A stretch of DNA of 64,000 nt from the sequence record OR836606.1; one strand, 5' to 3'. Of this stretch, positions 27,014 through 50,247 are shown one piece after another (within the stretch, counting starts at the first letter, position 1; every line of letters begins with the position of its first letter). The notes under the pieces are model-generated. The model was not told the origin of the DNA. It worked only from the letters and a program-made list of their open reading frames with translations, and made no database searches. The position numbers were made by a program, and so were the translations under genes.

Positions 27014-28485
27014 CTATTTACTAGCTTTTATACTCACATTTTTTGATTTAGGATTATTTAATAAATAAACCGCAATCTGCGAGTCTTTATTAAGTGAATA
27101 TGTTCTATTAAACAAACCATCATTATATGATATTAATTGATTGACTGGATCTTGTACTTTTAACATATCATACTGCTCTTCTGAAAATAAAGCTATAATA
27201 TTTAAAGTATCACCATCATAATCGGCACCCATTCCAGCTAAGATATTGTTACTAATACCTACTACAGCAGAATCAATATCATTAGTGATATCTTTAATTT
27301 TTAATATTTGAACTGAAGATTCTGAGATTGAAGGGTTCTTTTCATTAGACTATATCATTATCTTTTACTAAGATATATACTATTTAGTCGTTGAACAACT
27401 TATATTAAGTTGATGCTGATTAATTTTAATAAATCTTTTCAGCAATTAAGTATTATTAATTCATTAATATATTACTATATTAAGCCGCAACCCATTTTAC
27501 GGTTCAAAATTACTCTCATACCGCCTTCAGTTTTATTAACTAATTCTTTCATGTACTTATATACTTTAGGATTAAAGTTATCCAAAGCTTTACCTAATAT
27601 TTCTTCCGCTTTAGGTAATGGAATATTTTCTGTTACATACATTAAATTAGCCAATAATGGTTTATATATTTCTAAGAAGATTGTATAATTCATTCTAATT
27701 TCATTTAATTTTAAGTCAGGTGCTGGAACAATTACTGAACGAGCTGAATATCCTACTCGACTACCCATAATTAATTTACGAATAGTTCCCATTTTACCTT
27801 TAATATTCTCATTAATAATGCGCTCATAGATATTCATATTATCATCTTGAATTTTATTAAGTAAATTTAATTTCTGCAATTCAACTGAATCATCTGTATA
27901 ATGCTCATCTAATTCTTTAAGACTATTACTATGAGCAATTAATAAATTAAATTCTTTATTGATCTCTGAATGTCTAAATGTCTTAGTTGCCTTATTAACT
28001 GTGGCTGGTCTTAATTTAGGACTAAATACGGTTACATAATTTTGAAATAATGTTCCATTTAAATACCACTGAACAACCCTATTGTAATCTTTAGTTGAAC
28101 GTTTATCACGTTTAACTTCTTCTTTAAGAATTTTTAAAAAGTTCTTTCTAAATTCAACTAAACCAATATATGAATTATGATCATCTTCCGGTTCAATTAC
28201 ATTGCCATTCTCATCGATAGGTTTTTCAGAACTAATAATTTCAGCAAATCTTTTTCTACCTATTAGTTTTTTAATTCTATCATATCCTAAAGGCGTAATA
28301 ATATAGTTATTGCCTAAATAAATTATAGCTTCATTTGTAATATTATCTATATCTGAATCAGGTCCAAAGATTTTCTCACTGAAGATACCGTCTTCAGTGA
28401 AATCACCTTTCTTATCAATTGATTCATGATTAGTCACTACTGGTAATTTTGATAAATCTTTATTCTTAAGTAAAAATCTAGCCAT
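27014..28485 (-). CDS. RNA polymerase beta-prime-like catalytic subunit, spliced: join(28485..27499, 27337..27014)
   Basis: SARSVI and VILNR|NPSI join in frame to GADYDGD (cf. RpoC NADFDGD) once intron 27338-27498 is removed. Confidence 0.88.
27338..27498 (-). ncRNA. Minimal group I intron (161 nt)
   Basis: P/Q/R/S motifs TTAATTGCTGAAA, AATCAGCATC, GTTCAACGACTAAATA, GATATAGTCT; P1 CCGU/GCGG with U-G; P10 AACCC/GGGUU; terminal G; removal restores frame. Confidence 0.88.
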
Positions 28486-39942: not shown

Positions 39943-42900
39943 TTATTTACTTTCTTCAATAATTTCTTTAACTAAATTATTTATTTCTTGAGGTTTTAAA
40001 TCATTGATATCATCTACATTTTCATATTTTTCCATTAAGAATTCTAATTGATCTTCATTTAAATCCATAATACCTAGTAATTCATCTTCTTCAGGTTCAT
40101 CAAATGTCATACTAACATTTAATGGGCTGAAGTAAGCATTAAGTACTTTAGTATTATTATTTTGAGTTCTTTTTTGTATATCTTTTGTATTGATCTTAAA
40201 TGGATTACCTGTATATAATTCAACTAATAAACGTTTACGCATATCTGGATTATTTGAGTACATATTCGTTAATTGATTGATTGCTTTGATAGAGCCACCG
40301 ATCATCATATTAGTTGTTTCCATTTCACCGATGCGGAGCGGATTGTTGTTAATTCTTGACAAATATTTCTTGGACATGTGTATTAGCTTCATGCATTTTG
40401 CATAAAGATTAGACTATATCATTACCATTTAAGGTAGAATATATTTAGTCGTTGAACAAGCCTTACCGACTTGATGCTGATTTAATTAATAAATTATTCC
40501 AGCAATTAATATTACTTTTTTATATTATTCTTTCGAATAATACCGGACACAAGAAATTTATCCGGAGTTCTAGTAGGTCGTTTATCTTATATTAATTTTA
40601 ATACAAGACAGACTATATCATACTCATTATTATGAGTGAATATATTTAGTCGTTGAACAATTTTCATTGATGCTGATTATTCTTAATAGAACTTTCCAGC
40701 AATTAATATTCTTTTACTGAGACATCTACATATCCCACTGTAATTGTTAAAGTCTAATGATTTTGCACTGATTTTCTTTACGTTAATCTATATAATTTAT
40801 TATATAGAACAGACTATATCTTATACTTTTGAAGCATTAATATATTTAGTCGTTGAACAGTATTTAACTGATGCTAATCAATTTTATTAAATCGTCCTAG
40901 CAATTAATATTATAATTATAAATTATATTTCTATAATAAACGGCAAATTTTTACCTGATGGCGTTATTCATATAATACATTTATTATATGACAGACTATA
41001 TCATAATCTATTAATATAATAGATAATCTTTATTTAGTCGTTGAACACTTAATTGTGATGCTGATTATTCTGATAAGAATTTTCCAGCAATTAAAAGATT
41101 TTCGAATGAATCTTTGCAGATACATAGGAGACATCTAATTTGATTCTCATGTTTTAATTTAAGGTGATACAAATCTCCAACCATAAATGTTCTATTACTT
41201 ACGTCTAATCTATTTTTCTTAATATTATATTTATTAAATACGTATCTTAATTGTTCTGAATCAATATTACCAAAAAATGGTGCTTGGTGTAGCACAATAC
41301 CTTCTTTAATAATTTCATCAATAGCTTCTTTAGTTTCAGATAAATCTAATTGATTAAATAATTTAACATAATTGTCATATGAAATTTTATCTACATCTTT
41401 AATATATCCTAATAGATATTCTTTCTGTTGATTAATATCATCTAATTTACTTATACGATGTCTTATTACATTTGACACATGATTTAACTCTAATTCAATT
41501 AAAGCTGATGGATTACCACGGTTAATGATACCCATATTATTATGAATTAAATCTACTCGTTTACTAATTGGTGTTTTAGTAGAATCTTTAGTGAAATCTT
41601 CTCCATCGAACTCTGTGATCATTGGCATTTGATCATCAGGTACAATTTCAGCCACAACGCCTTTGCCGCCATCGAGTCTTCAGCAAAGATCGCTAATCTT
41701 TGCCCGTTCTCTTATGAACTGCTCTAGATTTTCTCTAGAAGACGAGACTATATCTTCACCCTAAAATTTAGGAGAACTATGTTTCCATTTAATAGAATTA
41801 CATTAAGCTAATATCACTTAAAAACTAACCGCTTGGCTGTACTCTACTCATATAGTAATTTTCTTCATTATAATATATACCATTTTGTATATACATTATA
41901 TTTTCACCATACTTATCGATAGTCGTTGAACTAATTAAATTATTGTCTAATATTTCATTCATTAATTTTCTTAATGTATCTAAATATATAGTTCCTTTTA
42001 TTCTTATCATATTATAATTTTTATTTTTTATAATTAAATTTTTAGTATCATCTATTAATACACATCTATTATAATGATCCCAACCTTTTTTAACTTTACT
42101 GTTTTTCCCACCCCAAGGTCGAAAATGTTGATTTCCATCAACTTCAATTATTAAATTTAATTCAGGGATATAAAAATCATATTTATAATACTTAGATTTA
42201 GATACATTTAGATTATTGTTTATTTTAAAATCATATTCATATTTTAGATTATTTGTTTTTAATATTTTAATAATTTCTCTTTCTGCTTTAGAAAAACTTC
42301 TTTCTTTATAACAAAAAGGACATCTTATTCCACCATTAACAAAATTTTTCCTCGTTGTTGTACTATATACTTTTCCACATTTTTTATGTTTTAAAGTTAT
42401 AGGAATTGTCTCTTTTACATATTCACCAAACATCTCATATTCACCATTAGAAACTTTTTCAATATCTTTTTTACAAGATTCCGTTGTCACTTCATAACCT
42501 GAGCATCGTTTACATATTGTTTTTACTCCATCTTTTCTTTTTCTTTTTAAAAGAGTTGTAGGAGATATATTTACAATATGTCCACATTTATGTTTAAATT
42601 TCATAGACTTACTGAATCCTTTATAATCTTCTTTATTAAATGTATATTCTCCTGGTAAAAATTTATTTAGTTTGTATTCAAGATTTTCTGGTGTTTGATT
42701 TTTAGTATAGAAACAATTGGGACAATAACCATGTTCATTATCTCTTTTAAATGTATGAGGTTTGGTTTTAAATTCTAAACCACAATCTAAATGTTTAATT
42801 AATGTAGATGTATCTCCGTTAATGTATTCTCCAAGAAGTACATAATTTTTATTATTTAAAATATTTTCAAAAATTCTTTTATTTTCTTCTCTTTTCATTT

Positions 42901-44221
42901 TAATCATTCCTTTCAAAAAGAAATGAATATTAGACAATTTTAATTAGCTGCTGATTAACCATTGCAAAAATACTTAGGTTTTTCAACCATATATTATCTC
43001 ATTTATTATCTTCAACTTTTCAGTAACCATAGAGGTTAAATGAGCTTTAGGCAGTCCCAGCAATTAATAGTTTTTTAATAGCATGTTACCATACTATGAG
43101 ACCTAGTTTGATCTCGTTGTGATTTTCGATCCATGAACTAAAGGTTTCTTTTCTAAAACTTTAACTCTGAAAATAATCTTATCAAATTGATTGTTATCGT
43201 AAACTAATTTAGCGTTATCATCAATATATCCTTTGAATTTATTATGGATTCTAATTAAGTCATTACTAAATTTCTTTTTACGTACAATATCATCTGTAAC
43301 AGTTACAAATGTTTTATAGAAGTGTCTCAATTCTTTAATATATTTAACAAATTGCTCTGAATATTTTTGATTTTCTAATTTTTCAATATCTTCATTATTA
43401 AGAACATCAATATCAATAACTTTACCGTGAACTTTATAAGCATTATCGTCTTCTAATGTTTTAGTAAGCATTTCATTTTTGAATTTATGAATAATCTCAT
43501 CATAATTCAATCTACGAGTTGCACACAATATTCCATTTTGAACTTCTTCTCCTACATCTGGAAATGATTTATATTCTTCTTCATTACCATATAAATTTAA
43601 TGGAATATCGTTTGTATTAATAGTAATATTGATTACATTCACAAAATAACTTGACATTTTCTCTGCCAATGATTCTGATACTACAATTCCGTCTTCATTC
43701 GTCATACCTTTGAACGGTAAGAATACGGAAGTTGCATTAGCTCCATATTGAAAGTTATTATCTTCATCATAGTTCTGGTCTTTAAATAATACAGTTTCTT
43801 TACTAACCGTATCTCCAACTTTCAATTTATCAATTTCTTCATTATTATATTTATTTCCAAACTTCTCTGCTAAATGGTTAGCTTCTTCTCTAATAATTAC
43901 ATCATATTCATCATTATCTTTGTACTTAATTAAATAATATTTAACATACTTATTTTTTTCAAACTTATAAATAACTTCAAAATCTCTATCAGCTTTCTTA
44001 TATCCAGTTGAATATTTACCCACTTGATTTTCAAAACCAGTCTGAATTAAAGGCGGTTCAGCACCAGTTAATTGAATACATTGACCGATATGAGACGTGA
44101 ACATTTGAGATCTGTTACCATTAGTTCTATTAACATTAGGCATTAATAGAGGTTCTGATAAAAACTCATGACTTCGATTAGCTTCAATTTCTACCATTCT
44201 TTGTGTCTTCTCTTTTGTCAT
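39943..44221 (-). CDS. RNA polymerase beta-like subunit, C-terminal part (probably non-virion RNAP), six exons: 44221..43111, 41672..41143, 40961..40953, 40775..40732, 40578..40560, 40374..39943
   Basis: Spliced product reads KITTR-Y-GGKGVV...YHLKLKHEN-PSG-KISAKSLDFNNYSGI-PTRTPD-SKKYLSRINNNPLRIGEME, colinear with RpoB GDKLAGRHGNKGV...YMLKLNH...ARSTG...GQRFGEME. Confidence 0.88.
40375..40559 (-). ncRNA. Minimal group I intron D (185 nt)
   Basis: P/Q/R/S core; P1 CCGGAU/GUCCGG; P10 CAAGAAA/UUUCUUG; terminal G. Confidence 0.88.
40579..40731 (-). ncRNA. Minimal group I intron C (153 nt)
   Basis: Core motifs; P1 GGGAU/GUCUC; P10 CUAC/GUAG; terminal G. Confidence 0.88.
40776..40952 (-). ncRNA. 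Minimal group I intron B (177 nt)
   Basis: Core motifs (P variant TTAATTGCTAGG); P1 GGU/GCC; terminal G; frame restored. Confidence 0.82.
40962..41142 (-). ncRNA. Minimal group I intron A (181 nt)
   Basis: Core motifs; P1 GAG(A)AU/GUCUC needs one bulged A, so the 5' splice site is slightly uncertain. Confidence 0.8.
41673..43110 (-). mobile_element. Group I intron (1438 nt) carrying an endonuclease ORF
   Basis: P1 GAGAU/GUCUC; ATTAATTGCTGGG, GTTCAACGACTA, GATATAGTCT; removal gives R-Y-GGKG. Confidence 0.88.
41825..42937 (-). CDS. Intron-encoded putative homing endonuclease (Zn-ribbon repeats + DUF559/PD-(D/E)xK-like domain)
   Basis: Repeated KH..CG...C..C units; YDFYIPELNLIIEVDGNQH nuclease motif; 3' end overlaps the intron core. 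Confidence 0.75.
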   Translation of the reverse strand: MSNIHFFLKGMIKMKREENKRIFENILNNKNYVLLGEYINGDTSTLIKHLDCGLEFKTKPHTFKRDNEHGYCPNCFYTKNQTPENLEYKLNKFLPGEYTFNKEDYKGFSKSMKFKHKCGHIVNISPTTLLKRKRKDGVKTICKRCSGYEVTTESCKKDIEKVSNGEYEMFGEYVKETIPITLKHKKCGKVYSTTTRKNFVNGGIRCPFCYKERSFSKAEREIIKILKTNNLKYEYDFKINNNLNVSKSKYYKYDFYIPELNLIIEVDGNQHFRPWGGKNSKVKKGWDHYNRCVLIDDTKNLIIKNKNYNMIRIKGTIYLDTLRKLMNEILDNNLISSTTIDKYGENIMYIQNGIYYNEENYYMSRVQPSG

Positions 44222-49146: not shown

Positions 49147-50247
49147 TTACATTTCTATTTTCTTATTTTCTAATTCTTTTTTATCTTCCTTAATTTCTTT
49201 AAGTTCTTCATAACCACGTAATCTTTCGTTATAAGCTTCTTCAGACATACGTTTTAAATCTTCTGTCATCTCAATCATATTATTTTGAGTTTGTTTAAGA
49301 ACATCAATGTCAATAAATGATTTATTAGATTCATTATACATTTGAACTGCATTATCTTTAAGGATATTGGAGTTACTTAATAAAATATCAGAAGTCGCTT
49401 CTCTAATAGCTTTGTTAGTTTTAATTGATTGTTGTTGCTGAATCAATACTACTGCTTTAGTTAATTGAGATTTCCAGATAGGGATACTATTTACTAAAGA
49501 ATTATTAATATTCTCTTTAAGACTATAATTAATATTCTTAATCATTTCTAATTCAAATACATTTTGCTCAGCTAAAGCTAATGAAGTACTTAAGTCATAA
49601 ATACGTTTATCAAGATTATCTAAACCTTGTTCTTTATCAGATACTAATTGAATTTGATTTTGTCTTTTATCATTTTCTTCAATATTTTCAACTTCATCAA
49701 TATCTTTTTGAATTTCATCTTTCAATTCTAGTTTTTTATATTTAGCGGCTTCAATATATTCACTCAAGCTCTCATAGTAATCTTTATTGGATTGAATTAA
49801 ATTATCTAAATTTTTATTTGCAGTATCAACTGAAGAACTGCTTTCTTTTAATTGTCTTTCAATGAAAGTCATATTATTTGAAGCTGAATCAACTTTAGAT
49901 AATTCTTTACCGATTAAATTTTCTTTACCTTTATTAAACATAGATTTAATTTTATCCATGAAACCTTTTTCTTCTTGTTTCATATTTTCATCAATCTTTT
50001 GTGGGTCATATGAGTTAAATACTTCTAACATATCATCTAGTACTTTATTAATCTTTTCATTAGAATCGTTCTCTTTAATATTCTTTAATACTTTATCTGA
50101 TTCTTTAGATAATTTATCTTGTACTTCATGTCCATACTCAATAATAGTTTTCTTATCAAGTATATTAATTTCATCAACCTTTTTAAAAACCTCCGGTGAA
50201 ATGTTCTCTCTGCTCATTAATTCATTTTTATTATTTTCCATATCCAA
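49147..50247 (-). CDS. telA: TelA-family toxic anion resistance protein
   Basis: IIEYG.EVQ..LS...,KRIYDLSTS,SIPIWKSQL,IDIDVLKQTQ match the TelA pattern. Confidence 0.8.
   Translation of the reverse strand: MDMENNKNELMSRENISPEVFKKVDEINILDKKTIIEYGHEVQDKLSKESDKVLKNIKENDSNEKINKVLDDMLEVFNSYDPQKIDENMKQEEKGFMDKIKSMFNKGKENLIGKELSKVDSASNNMTFIERQLKESSSSVDTANKNLDNLIQSNKDYYESLSEYIEAAKYKKLELKDEIQKDIDEVENIEENDKRQNQIQLVSDKEQGLDNLDKRIYDLSTSLALAEQNVFELEMIKNINYSLKENINNSLVNSIPIWKSQLTKAVVLIQQQQSIKTNKAIREATSDILLSNSNILKDNAVQMYNESNKSFIDIDVLKQTQNNMIEMTEDLKRMSEEAYNERLRGYEELKEIKEDKKELENKKIEM

Follow-up and report, generated by a model that had tools for sequence, protein, structure and literature searches.

Group I introns packed tightly into one phage gene have a precedent in the Staphylococcus phage Twort, whose small gene orf142 is reported to hold three such introns and to undergo exon skipping (Landthaler and Shub 1999). 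The present analysis concerns nt 1-64000 (hereafter the window, 64,000 nucleotides in length and with 100% identity to the record) of the Staphylococcus jumbo phage LY01 (OR836606.1; genome of 258,897 bp), the record of which names S. aureus YZ4 as the host and a pig farm, and which belongs to the AR9-like, S6/MarsHill-like jumbo phages. On the minus strand of the window, the gene coding for the C-terminal half of the non-virion RNA polymerase (nvRNAP) beta subunit, of the AR9 type, is interrupted by four tandem units which are very probably independent miniature group I introns (153-185 nt) devoid of open reading frames (ORFs), with a fifth, endonuclease-carrying intron 530 nt upstream; the array would be the local product of a mobile mini-intron family and not a regulatory device. 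Twort orf142 is similar in that several group I introns are packed in one Staphylococcus-phage gene, with short internal exons and possible alternative joining, whereas the phage family, the gene and the intron family differ.

Multi-intron RNA polymerase (RNAP) genes were predicted in MarsHill-like phages by Korn et al. (bioRxiv 10.1101/2020.12.14.422802), the exons being deduced from protein alignment only and the intron structure not being described. The same gene in Machias, MarsHill and Madawaska carries the same mini-intron family as in LY01, and sites 1647 and 1711 (sites are numbered by the coordinates of the PALS_2 coding sequence, CDS) are common to LY01, Machias and AH12. Tandem introns with micro-exons also occur there: our mapping gave exons of 20, 64 and 44 nt around three minimal introns within ~630 bp in Machias and AH12, and a 22-nt exon in the MarsHill gene. 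LY01 differs from Machias, MarsHill and Madawaska by its own set of sites, a smaller exon (9 nt), four minimal introns within 768 bp and the absence of a split-gene annotation. As for the Bacillus jumbo phage AR9, group I introns in RNAP and other genes have been reported (Lavysh et al. 2016); AR9 resembles LY01 as a uracil-DNA jumbo phage with two multisubunit RNAPs encoded by genes that self-splicing introns interrupt, and its chain 7s00_C is the orthologue of the subunit studied here. In contrast to LY01, the orthologous region of AR9 is read through by tblastn without interruption, and no copy of the LY01 mini-intron family was found in AR9 or PBS1 by blastn with the third small intron (I3).

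In PhiPA3, the intron endonuclease gp210, encoded in an RNAP beta gene, has a tested role, described by Birkholz et al. (2024, PMC11620839), in interfering with intron-less relatives that infect the same cell. In both jumbo phages, an endonuclease-bearing group I intron interrupts the RNAP beta gene at conserved residues (HNH in PhiPA3, labelled 'HNH endonuclease' by PHROG in LY01), but PhiPA3 is a nucleus-forming Pseudomonas phage with a single intron, and the four minimal introns of LY01 are without endonuclease. Outside phages, self-splicing introns are so dense in the conserved mitochondrial genes cox1 and rnl of fungi and placozoans that exons shrink to micro- or mini-exons of one to few nucleotides (PMC5436844, PMC12308204; the single-base exon case of PMC12308204 sits between group II introns). 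Those introns are organellar, large and mostly ORF-carrying, whereas the LY01 mini-introns, found in a virus, are 146-185 nt long and lack ORFs.

As a whole, the LY01 array is an extreme, unannotated example of a kind already known in its relatives, to which it adds sites 1638 and 1691, the 9-nt exon and the densest run so far; the locus shows neither a new kind of element nor a new regulatory principle. It does show the extent of intron crowding in a virus: this gene alone contains five introns, and exon length falls to 9 nt in it and to 6 nt at another place in the genome. An original prediction, made from the sequence of the window, had stated that introns are known in RNAP genes of AR9-like phages, as AR9 and the annotated joins of Machias, MarsHill and Madawaska confirm. 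It had placed the novelty in density and exon size; the 9-nt exon and the densest run in the gene agree with this, whereas the precedents in Machias, MarsHill and AH12 and the 6-nt exon elsewhere in LY01 reduce it.

The split nvRNAP beta gene and its predicted spliced product

In GenBank, the gene is represented by four 'hypothetical protein' CDSs (43103-44221, 41825-42898, 41065-41655 and 39943-40377) without any join, so that an essential polymerase subunit of LY01 is now on record as four hypothetical proteins. No Pfam match was obtained with the separate exon products, which accounts in part for this annotation failure, and the rpoB models of NCBIfam matched below their cut-offs. The identity of the gene was established from full-length homology: the PALS_2 orthologue, to which the spliced LY01 product is 97% identical, matches the AR9 nvRNAP chain 7s00_C over its whole length (residues 13-665, E 5e-143), as well as phiKZ 7ogp_C and bacterial beta subunits. 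A tblastn search with exon 2 retrieved RNAP beta subunits in 21 phage records, AR9 and PBS1 among them. The AR9 counterpart of the interrupted stretch, LKLKHE-PSGK-SAKS...NNNPLRIGEME, is LKHEPHSKFSARS...PVRIGNME.

Uninterrupted alleles, annotated as RNA polymerase beta subunit and ~94% identical to the LY01 exons, are present in PALS_2, S6, DC4 and SA1 (2142 nt; 2136 nt in SA1). The exons were mapped base by base by spliced alignment to the intron-less PALS_2 allele (2142 nt), with anchored extraction for the tiny exons. The resulting map is given below from the 5' to the 3' end of the gene, together with the scores of the covariance model (CM) described in the next section.

43111-44221, minus strand: exon 1, 94% nucleotide identity to PALS_2 CDS 1-1106/1111, ending in ...GSKITTR and the first base of Tyr; 5' splice site after GAGAT
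41673-43110, minus strand: endonuclease-carrying group I intron, 1438 nt; limits from the intron-less allele, T at -1, last base G
41143-41672, minus strand: exon 2, 530 nt, 94% identity to PALS_2 CDS 1112-1637; YGGKGVVAEIV...LKLKHE(N)
40962-41142, minus strand: predicted intron I1, 181 nt; P2 with GCAA loop, P3 AAUCUUU/AAAGAUU, irregular P1; CM 111 bits, E 1e-18
40953-40961, minus strand: micro-exon 1, 9 nt, CCATCAGGT (Pro-Ser-Gly); CCGTCTGGT in PALS_2, with two synonymous differences; identical in AH12 and Machias
40776-40952, minus strand: predicted intron I2, 177 nt; P1 GGU/GCC; CM 119 bits; insertion site common to AH12 and Machias introns
40732-40775, minus strand: micro-exon 2, 44 nt, KISAKSLDFNNYSG and two bases of Ile; 86% identity to PALS_2 CDS 1648-1691, synonymous except I/L
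40579-40731, minus strand: predicted intron I3, 153 nt, without P2; P1 GGGAU/GUCUC; CM 127 bits
40560-40578, minus strand: micro-exon 3, 19 nt, ACCTACTAGAACTCCGGAT ((I)PTRTPD); 95% identity to PALS_2 CDS 1693-1711, synonymous differences
40375-40559, minus strand: predicted intron I4, 185 nt; P1 CCGGAU/GUCCGG, P10 of 7 bp UUUCUUG/CAAGAAA, P2 with GAAA loop; CM 127 bits
39943-40374, minus strand: last exon (E6), SKKYLSRINNNPLRIGEME... to the stop codon; 92% identity to PALS_2 CDS 1714-2142

Once joined, the six exons give a product of 714 aa without internal stop, 97% identical to the PALS_2 protein and with a single gap, so that precise removal of the introns leaves a colinear reading frame with one extra codon, located at I1. 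Compared to PALS_2, the micro-exons display only synonymous changes and one Ile/Leu replacement, as expected of translated sequence. The four-intron stretch covers 768 bp inside the most conserved, active-site-proximal part of the gene, and in unspliced RNA translation is predicted to stop 2-25 codons into each intron. The original prediction had proposed introns of 181, 177, 153 and 185 nt separated by micro-exons of 9, 44 and 19 nt, as well as a colinear RpoB C-terminal region after removal of these four and of the endonuclease intron; the PALS_2-based map returned the same sizes and coordinates and the stop-free 714-aa frame. Its junction peptide GIPTRTPDSK is colinear with the homologues, and the micro-exons are indeed missing from the ORF track, as from the four GenBank CDSs. 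A twintron (nested intron) was rejected, the units lying side by side with micro-exons between them that match the intron-less allele.

Concerning the upstream intron, P1 is a predicted hairpin (GAGAU/GUCUC), the P5 region is extended, and the R box (41920-41931) falls within the 3' end of the ORF that the intron contains. This ORF (41825-42937) matches PHROG 559 'HNH endonuclease' at 1e-48 and, weakly, Pfam DUF559 (17 bits, below cut-off), with no NCBIfam match. An endonuclease-family ORF, putatively of the HNH type, is thus located inside the intron. By analogy with PhiPA3 gp210, its product may target intron-less relatives during co-infection.

Group I anatomy of the small introns

Each of the four ~180-nt units possesses the boxes TTAATTGCTGG, AATCAGCATC, GTTCAACGACTAAATA and GATATAGTCT, which we equate with the classical P, Q, R and S elements of this intron class. 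Ten exact occurrences of the 12-mer GTTCAACGACTA were counted in the window, none of them on the plus strand, and 12 matches are found when up to two mismatches are allowed, against 2.7 expected, i.e. a repetition far beyond chance. The units were aligned with 13 further copies, nine from the same gene of MarsHill, Machias and AH12 and four from elsewhere in the window. Throughout these 17 introns, the four boxes are invariant or nearly so, while the segments between them (P2, P5, P6, P8 and P9) fold as hairpins in every case despite their differing sequence. P3 exists in at least six compensating versions (e.g. GAAUAU/AUAUUC, AAUCUUU/AAAGAUU, AUACU/AGUAU and UUUCU/AGAAA). P7 (GACUA/UAGUC) is paired in 17 of 17 sequences and, being invariant, carries no covariation information; it is spanned by the co-varying P3, as in a pseudoknot. 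Helices P3, P4, P5, P6, P8 and P9 are therefore all found around the conserved boxes. RNAalifold on a MAFFT alignment, in which the variable hairpins were misaligned, recovered P4, P7 and P8 only, and a hand-made structure with CM re-alignment was used instead.

The ends of the introns follow the same rule. All five LY01 introns of this gene have a T at -1 and a terminal G, and the terminal G is found at every junction fixed by intron-less alleles, in these five as well as in the 13 introns of the relatives. A comparison of the sites shows that guide and exon end change in concert (GGAU/GUCC, GAAU/GUUC, CCGU/GCGG, GAGGU/GCCUC, CUGU/GCAG and CGAU/GUCG). It had been predicted that each intron has its own P1 with a U-G pair, and most of them a P10. 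The U-G pair is present in I2 (GGU/GCC), I3 (GGGAU/GUCUC), I4 (CCGGAU/GUCCGG) and the endonuclease intron (GAGAU/GUCUC), whereas I1 has an irregular P1 without a clean U-G; as for P10, it can be drawn for all four small introns, weakly in I1 and I2, with 5 of 6 bp in I3 and 7 bp in I4.

A covariance model built on the 17 sequences scored the four units, which were themselves among its training set, at 111-127 bits (E <= 1e-18), and returned zero matches on the intron-less loci. In an alignment of 30 matches fitted with the model, standard pairs occupy 91% of the pair cells, against 33-47% in slid controls, and 24 of the 30 pairs show changes on both sides, values reached by none of 500 shuffles.

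On this anatomy, each intron would fold on the pre-mRNA into its own P1-P9 core, its 5' splice site being picked by a 3-6-nt guide that pairs with the end of the preceding exon or micro-exon through a U-G wobble. Release would then proceed by two guanosine-initiated transesterifications, ending at the terminal G. The micro-exons would be just long enough to provide P10 for the upstream intron and P1 for the downstream one without overlap, and the five splicing events would be independent, giving together one colinear subunit of 713/714 aa.

The junction of I1 and the order of removal

Several points weigh against the preferred interpretation. Splicing is deduced here from the anatomy, and Rfam Intron_gpI gave no match at its gathering score over the whole window and none at E <= 10 in 39800-43300. 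The Rfam miss is taken as a sensitivity limit and not as evidence against introns; in the DC4 paper, too, Rfam is reported to have detected none, DC4 being without this family. The covariation counts given above derive from an alignment fitted to the structure and so lean towards it, and as many of the introns are closely related, the double changes are not all independent events and the numbers are generous. As to the mobility of the family, a trans-acting endonuclease, reverse splicing and recombination between copies are all candidate modes. The remaining objections concern I1. Its U/G-rule junction reads ...CAT GAG AAT|CCA TCA GGT, that is KHE-N-PSGK with an extra Asn, and this residue is absent in 12 of the 12 homologues examined, all of which read KHE-PSGK or KHE-P.. 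(PALS_2 and SA1, read directly; the uninterrupted alleles of S6 and DC4; MarsHill, Madawaska and PB50, uninterrupted there according to spliced alignment; Machias and AH12; two 68%-identical Logan contigs; AR9). Moreover, its P1 pairs GAGA-A-U with G-UCUC, which requires a bulged A, and in the minimum free energy fold the guide G is bulged and the U-G wobble is lost.

Because of the extra Asn absent from homologues and of the irregular P1, the junction of I1 is uncertain. The peptide HENPSGKISAK, proposed earlier for this junction, agrees with the mapped limits of I1 but contains the Asn seen in no homologue, and is doubtful to that extent. The candidate exon joins are the rule-based ...CATGAGAAT|CCATCAGGT and two other in-frame joins, neither of which has a U-G pair: the non-canonical ...CATGAG|CCATCAGGT, after G41146 (KHE|PSGK), and one after U41149 (KH|PSGK). 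The HEN|PSG junction is slightly favoured, and exact colinearity through a non-canonical site after G41146 has a lesser, though real, chance, with other outcomes taking up the rest.

I1 could thus be damaged or non-canonical, either splicing after G41146, as an intron of 184 nt that leaves KHE|PSGK exactly colinear, or splicing poorly and being the weak link of the gene. The extra codon missing from every homologue, AR9 and the two distant Logan contigs included, and the bulged guide G both point in this direction, and a second LY01 intron, in the virion RNA polymerase (vRNAP) beta' gene, has its U-G pair 1 nt off the colinear junction. This explanation is nevertheless judged unlikely: the opening bases of I1, CAAAUUAG, can be aligned with those of the endonuclease intron, CAAACUAG, an intron with a junction verified on the intron-less allele; the +3 junction is in frame and gives the complete 714-aa protein; and LY01 is a propagated isolate, hence the gene must work. 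Nearly all group I introns have a U at -1, which also argues against the non-canonical site. No further copy of I1 was obtained from two exact-pattern scans of IMG/VR or from a related-locus search of viral contigs; a metagenome scan yielded one contig, which ends short of the region, and a protein search yielded the two Logan contigs, which lack the extra codon and whose introns, larger and of a different kind, occupy some of these sites.

The original prediction had also suggested that ordered splicing may gate RNAP output; on this reading, the introns would have to come out in a set sequence, or so inefficiently that splicing is limiting, and the array would time or throttle nvRNAP production. 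With five splicing events per essential subunit, the yield would be the product of five efficiencies; two ribozyme cores 9 nt apart may clash sterically, and this crowding, like mis-pairing of near-identical cores, is a conceivable cost. Aberrant isoforms are also conceivable, since skipping all three micro-exons stays in frame (690 aa, no stop), and exon skipping by phage group I introns is reported for Twort orf142 and, at 47%, for a Bastillevirinae polymerase gene. The micro-exons themselves lend no support to gating, though. In every one of them P10 and P1 draw on distinct bases (for the 9-mer, CATC for P10 and GGT for P1; for the 19-mer, CCTAC and CCGGAT, respectively), and base pairing therefore imposes no order of removal. 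The introns found in the same gene of the relatives, as compared with LY01, are as follows.

LY01: sites ~1111 (endonuclease-carrying), 1638, 1647, 1691 and 1711; 5 introns
MarsHill: sites 1093, ~1115 and 1754; 3 introns, annotated as a 4-exon join
Madawaska: sites ~1115 and 1754; 2 introns, annotated as a 3-exon join
Machias: sites ~1115, ~1627 (endonuclease-carrying), 1647, 1711 and 1754; 5 introns, annotated as a 6-exon join
AH12: sites 525, 1093, ~1627 (endonuclease-carrying), 1647, 1711 and 1754; 6 introns, unannotated
PB50: sites 525, 1093 and 1754; 3 introns

Close relatives with 94% identical exons have 0, 2 or 3 introns at other sites, which indicates that the array is dispensable and evolutionarily labile, and the same family occupies 33 places in LY01, structural genes included. 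A regulatory role of the array is accordingly considered improbable. Finally, that the units are non-splicing repeats or decayed intron remnants, with the beta C-half made as separate polypeptides or being a pseudogene, would agree with the four separate hypothetical proteins of GenBank and with the Rfam result but is hardly credible, given that the 9-, 44- and 19-nt pieces encode PSG, KISAKSLDFNNYSG(I) and PTRTPD in frame, in order and with almost only synonymous differences, that these residues fall in the conserved region beside GEME, and that the catalytic-core columns are all intact in the four units.

The mini-intron family in LY01 and its relatives

The preferred interpretation, a mobile family of which the nvRNAP array is a local result, leads to the distribution of the family. 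The nvRNAP beta gene is an insertion hot spot, judging from the sequences compared: ~10 sites are used, with an occupancy that varies between phages whose exons are 82-94% identical, and LY01 sites 1638 and 1691 are in no other record. Two Logan contigs (ERR10857033_7543 and SRR15442457_778), coding for a ~68% identical subunit, contain group I introns that are larger (~330-365 nt) and of another kind, inserted at or beside sites ~1115, ~1627 and 1647, and at 1757 instead of 1754, with the same 20-nt exon TAAAACATGAGCCTTCTGGT; insertion sites are thus reused by unrelated introns. Beyond this gene, blastn with I3 found the family in six Staphylococcus jumbo phages only, with 33 places in LY01, 29 in Machias, 28 in AH12, 19 in PB50, 11 in Madawaska and 9 in MarsHill, and found none in PALS_2, S6, DC4 and SA1. 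With the covariance model, 33 strong copies (at least 91 bits) were counted over the whole LY01 genome, some of them in structural genes. Whereas introns and micro-exons both escape standard tools (ORF callers and Rfam), this simple model recovers all 33 copies.

Other tandem arrays were found in LY01, and the micro-exons given below were checked against the intron-less PALS_2 or DC4 alleles.

Segment L014, 17687-18033: tandem array with a 16-nt exon
Segment L014, 23948-25232: tandem array of four copies
Segment L015, 12792-14161: tandem array
Segment L016, 19675-20313: tandem array
Segment L016, 27206-27988: tandem array
50691-51020 of the window, minus strand: tandem pair in the vRNAP beta gene, with introns at 50875-51020 (146 nt) and 50691-50856 (166 nt) around the 18-nt exon ATTTACACGTTAAGAGGT (50857-50874); mapped on the intron-less DC4 allele, in a region homologous to the nvRNAP array

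Concerning vRNAP beta', a 16-nt micro-exon is present in one piece of the gene, and the catalytic motif itself is in pieces (LY01 genome ~176620-177230; segment L015, 13222-13830): ...YAG(A) is followed by a large intron, 14 nt (CGTTAGGTGCCGAT), a mini-intron, 9 nt (TTTGACGGT), a second mini-intron and GATATG.... The residues F-D-G in the catalytic ADFDGD motif are encoded by the 9-nt exon TTTGACGGT. In the large intron, the P1 U-G pair (GGAGU/GCUCC) lies 1 nt past the colinear junction and the rule-based junction would shift the frame, which may reflect either a sequence error or the choice of a non-canonical site. A 6-nt micro-exon, TACGAT (Tyr-Asp), sits between two mini-introns of the prohead scaffold/protease gene at 240999-241004 of the genome (segment L016, 27799-27804); both of its junctions obey the U/G rule with P1 pairing (CUGU/GCAG and CGAU/GUCG), and the Madawaska gene has the downstream intron only. 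Given these two exons, the 9-nt exon CCATCAGGT is neither unique nor the smallest in LY01.

In the window, a 161-nt mini-intron (27338-27498, minus strand) also lies upstream of the catalytic motif ADYDGD (~27215) of a beta'-like gene; the junction predicted from the frame is ...LNR|NPSISESS, with P1 CCGU/GCGG and a terminal G. The top-scoring copy of the family (132 bits; 60009-60186, minus strand) begins in the 3' end of the ORF 60168-60530, which has HNH-endonuclease PHROG matches, and a second endonuclease-like ORF (59368-59799) lies downstream of it.

As for the origin of the four introns, the core of I3 is 96% identical to a MarsHill intron at a different site, 1093, and the core of I4 shares 95% identity with the MarsHill intron at 1754, while the nearest relative of the P1-P2 module of I4 is the AH12 intron at site 1711, where I4 itself is inserted. 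For I2, the match is the AH12 intron at the same site, 1647 (its 5' part being closest to AH12_s1647), and I1 is closest to the site-1115 introns. Such differences between the relatives of the core and those of the P1-P2 module could stem either from moves to ectopic sites whose exon ends are alike (many being GGAU, GAAU or GGU) or from recombination between copies through the long identical boxes. The mobile family would then repeatedly invade conserved sites of essential genes, its catalytic cores being swapped among introns of different sites, whereas the P1-P2 targeting module would remain tied to its site.

Tentatively, and with somewhat less than even confidence, LY01 may have undergone a burst of miniature ORF-less group I introns (146-185 nt; 33 copies in 259 kb, against none in sisters with ~94% exon identity), reminiscent of miniature inverted-repeat transposable elements (MITEs). 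In this scenario, near-identical cores (95-96%) at different sites across phages would be combined with site-specific P1-P2 modules, insertions would pile up in active-site codons and leave exons down to 6-19 nt, and at least two copies would have a U-G pair displaced from the colinear junction.

Should these RNAs be self-splicing, they would rank with the smallest group I ribozymes found in nature, no size record being claimed; to our knowledge, characterised group I ribozymes are ~200 nt or longer. They would also offer a natural system for ectopic intron transposition and for ribozyme crowding on one transcript. The close relatives form a natural series of 0, 2, 3, 5 and 6 introns in the gene, over ~10 sites, suited to the study of intron gain, loss and relocation, of marker exclusion between co-infecting jumbo phages and of the minimal size of a working group I ribozyme.

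Several other elements were observed in the window. The gyrA gene is split: its 920-aa N-terminal ORF (55600-58362, minus strand), which also contains an intein bearing a LAGLIDADG domain, precedes a larger group I core (R box at 55286, S box at ~55170), which is followed in turn by a TnpB/OrfB_IS605 ORF (53824-55044; Cas12f1-like_TNB, 7e-19) and then by the ORF of the GyrA C-terminal beta-propeller (52796-53617). The region 53824-55590 (minus strand) resembles an IStron, in which a group I intron is fused to an IS605-type element, here within the gyrase gene of a phage. Another TnpB ORF is located at 62341-63483. The ORF at 61182-62000 (minus strand) has a metallo-beta-lactamase fold and a sub-threshold match to the anti-Pycsar protein Apyc1 (3e-7, 30 bits vs. 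a cut-off of 50), and the one at 49147-50247 (minus strand) is TelA-like, of the tellurite-resistance family (1e-56).

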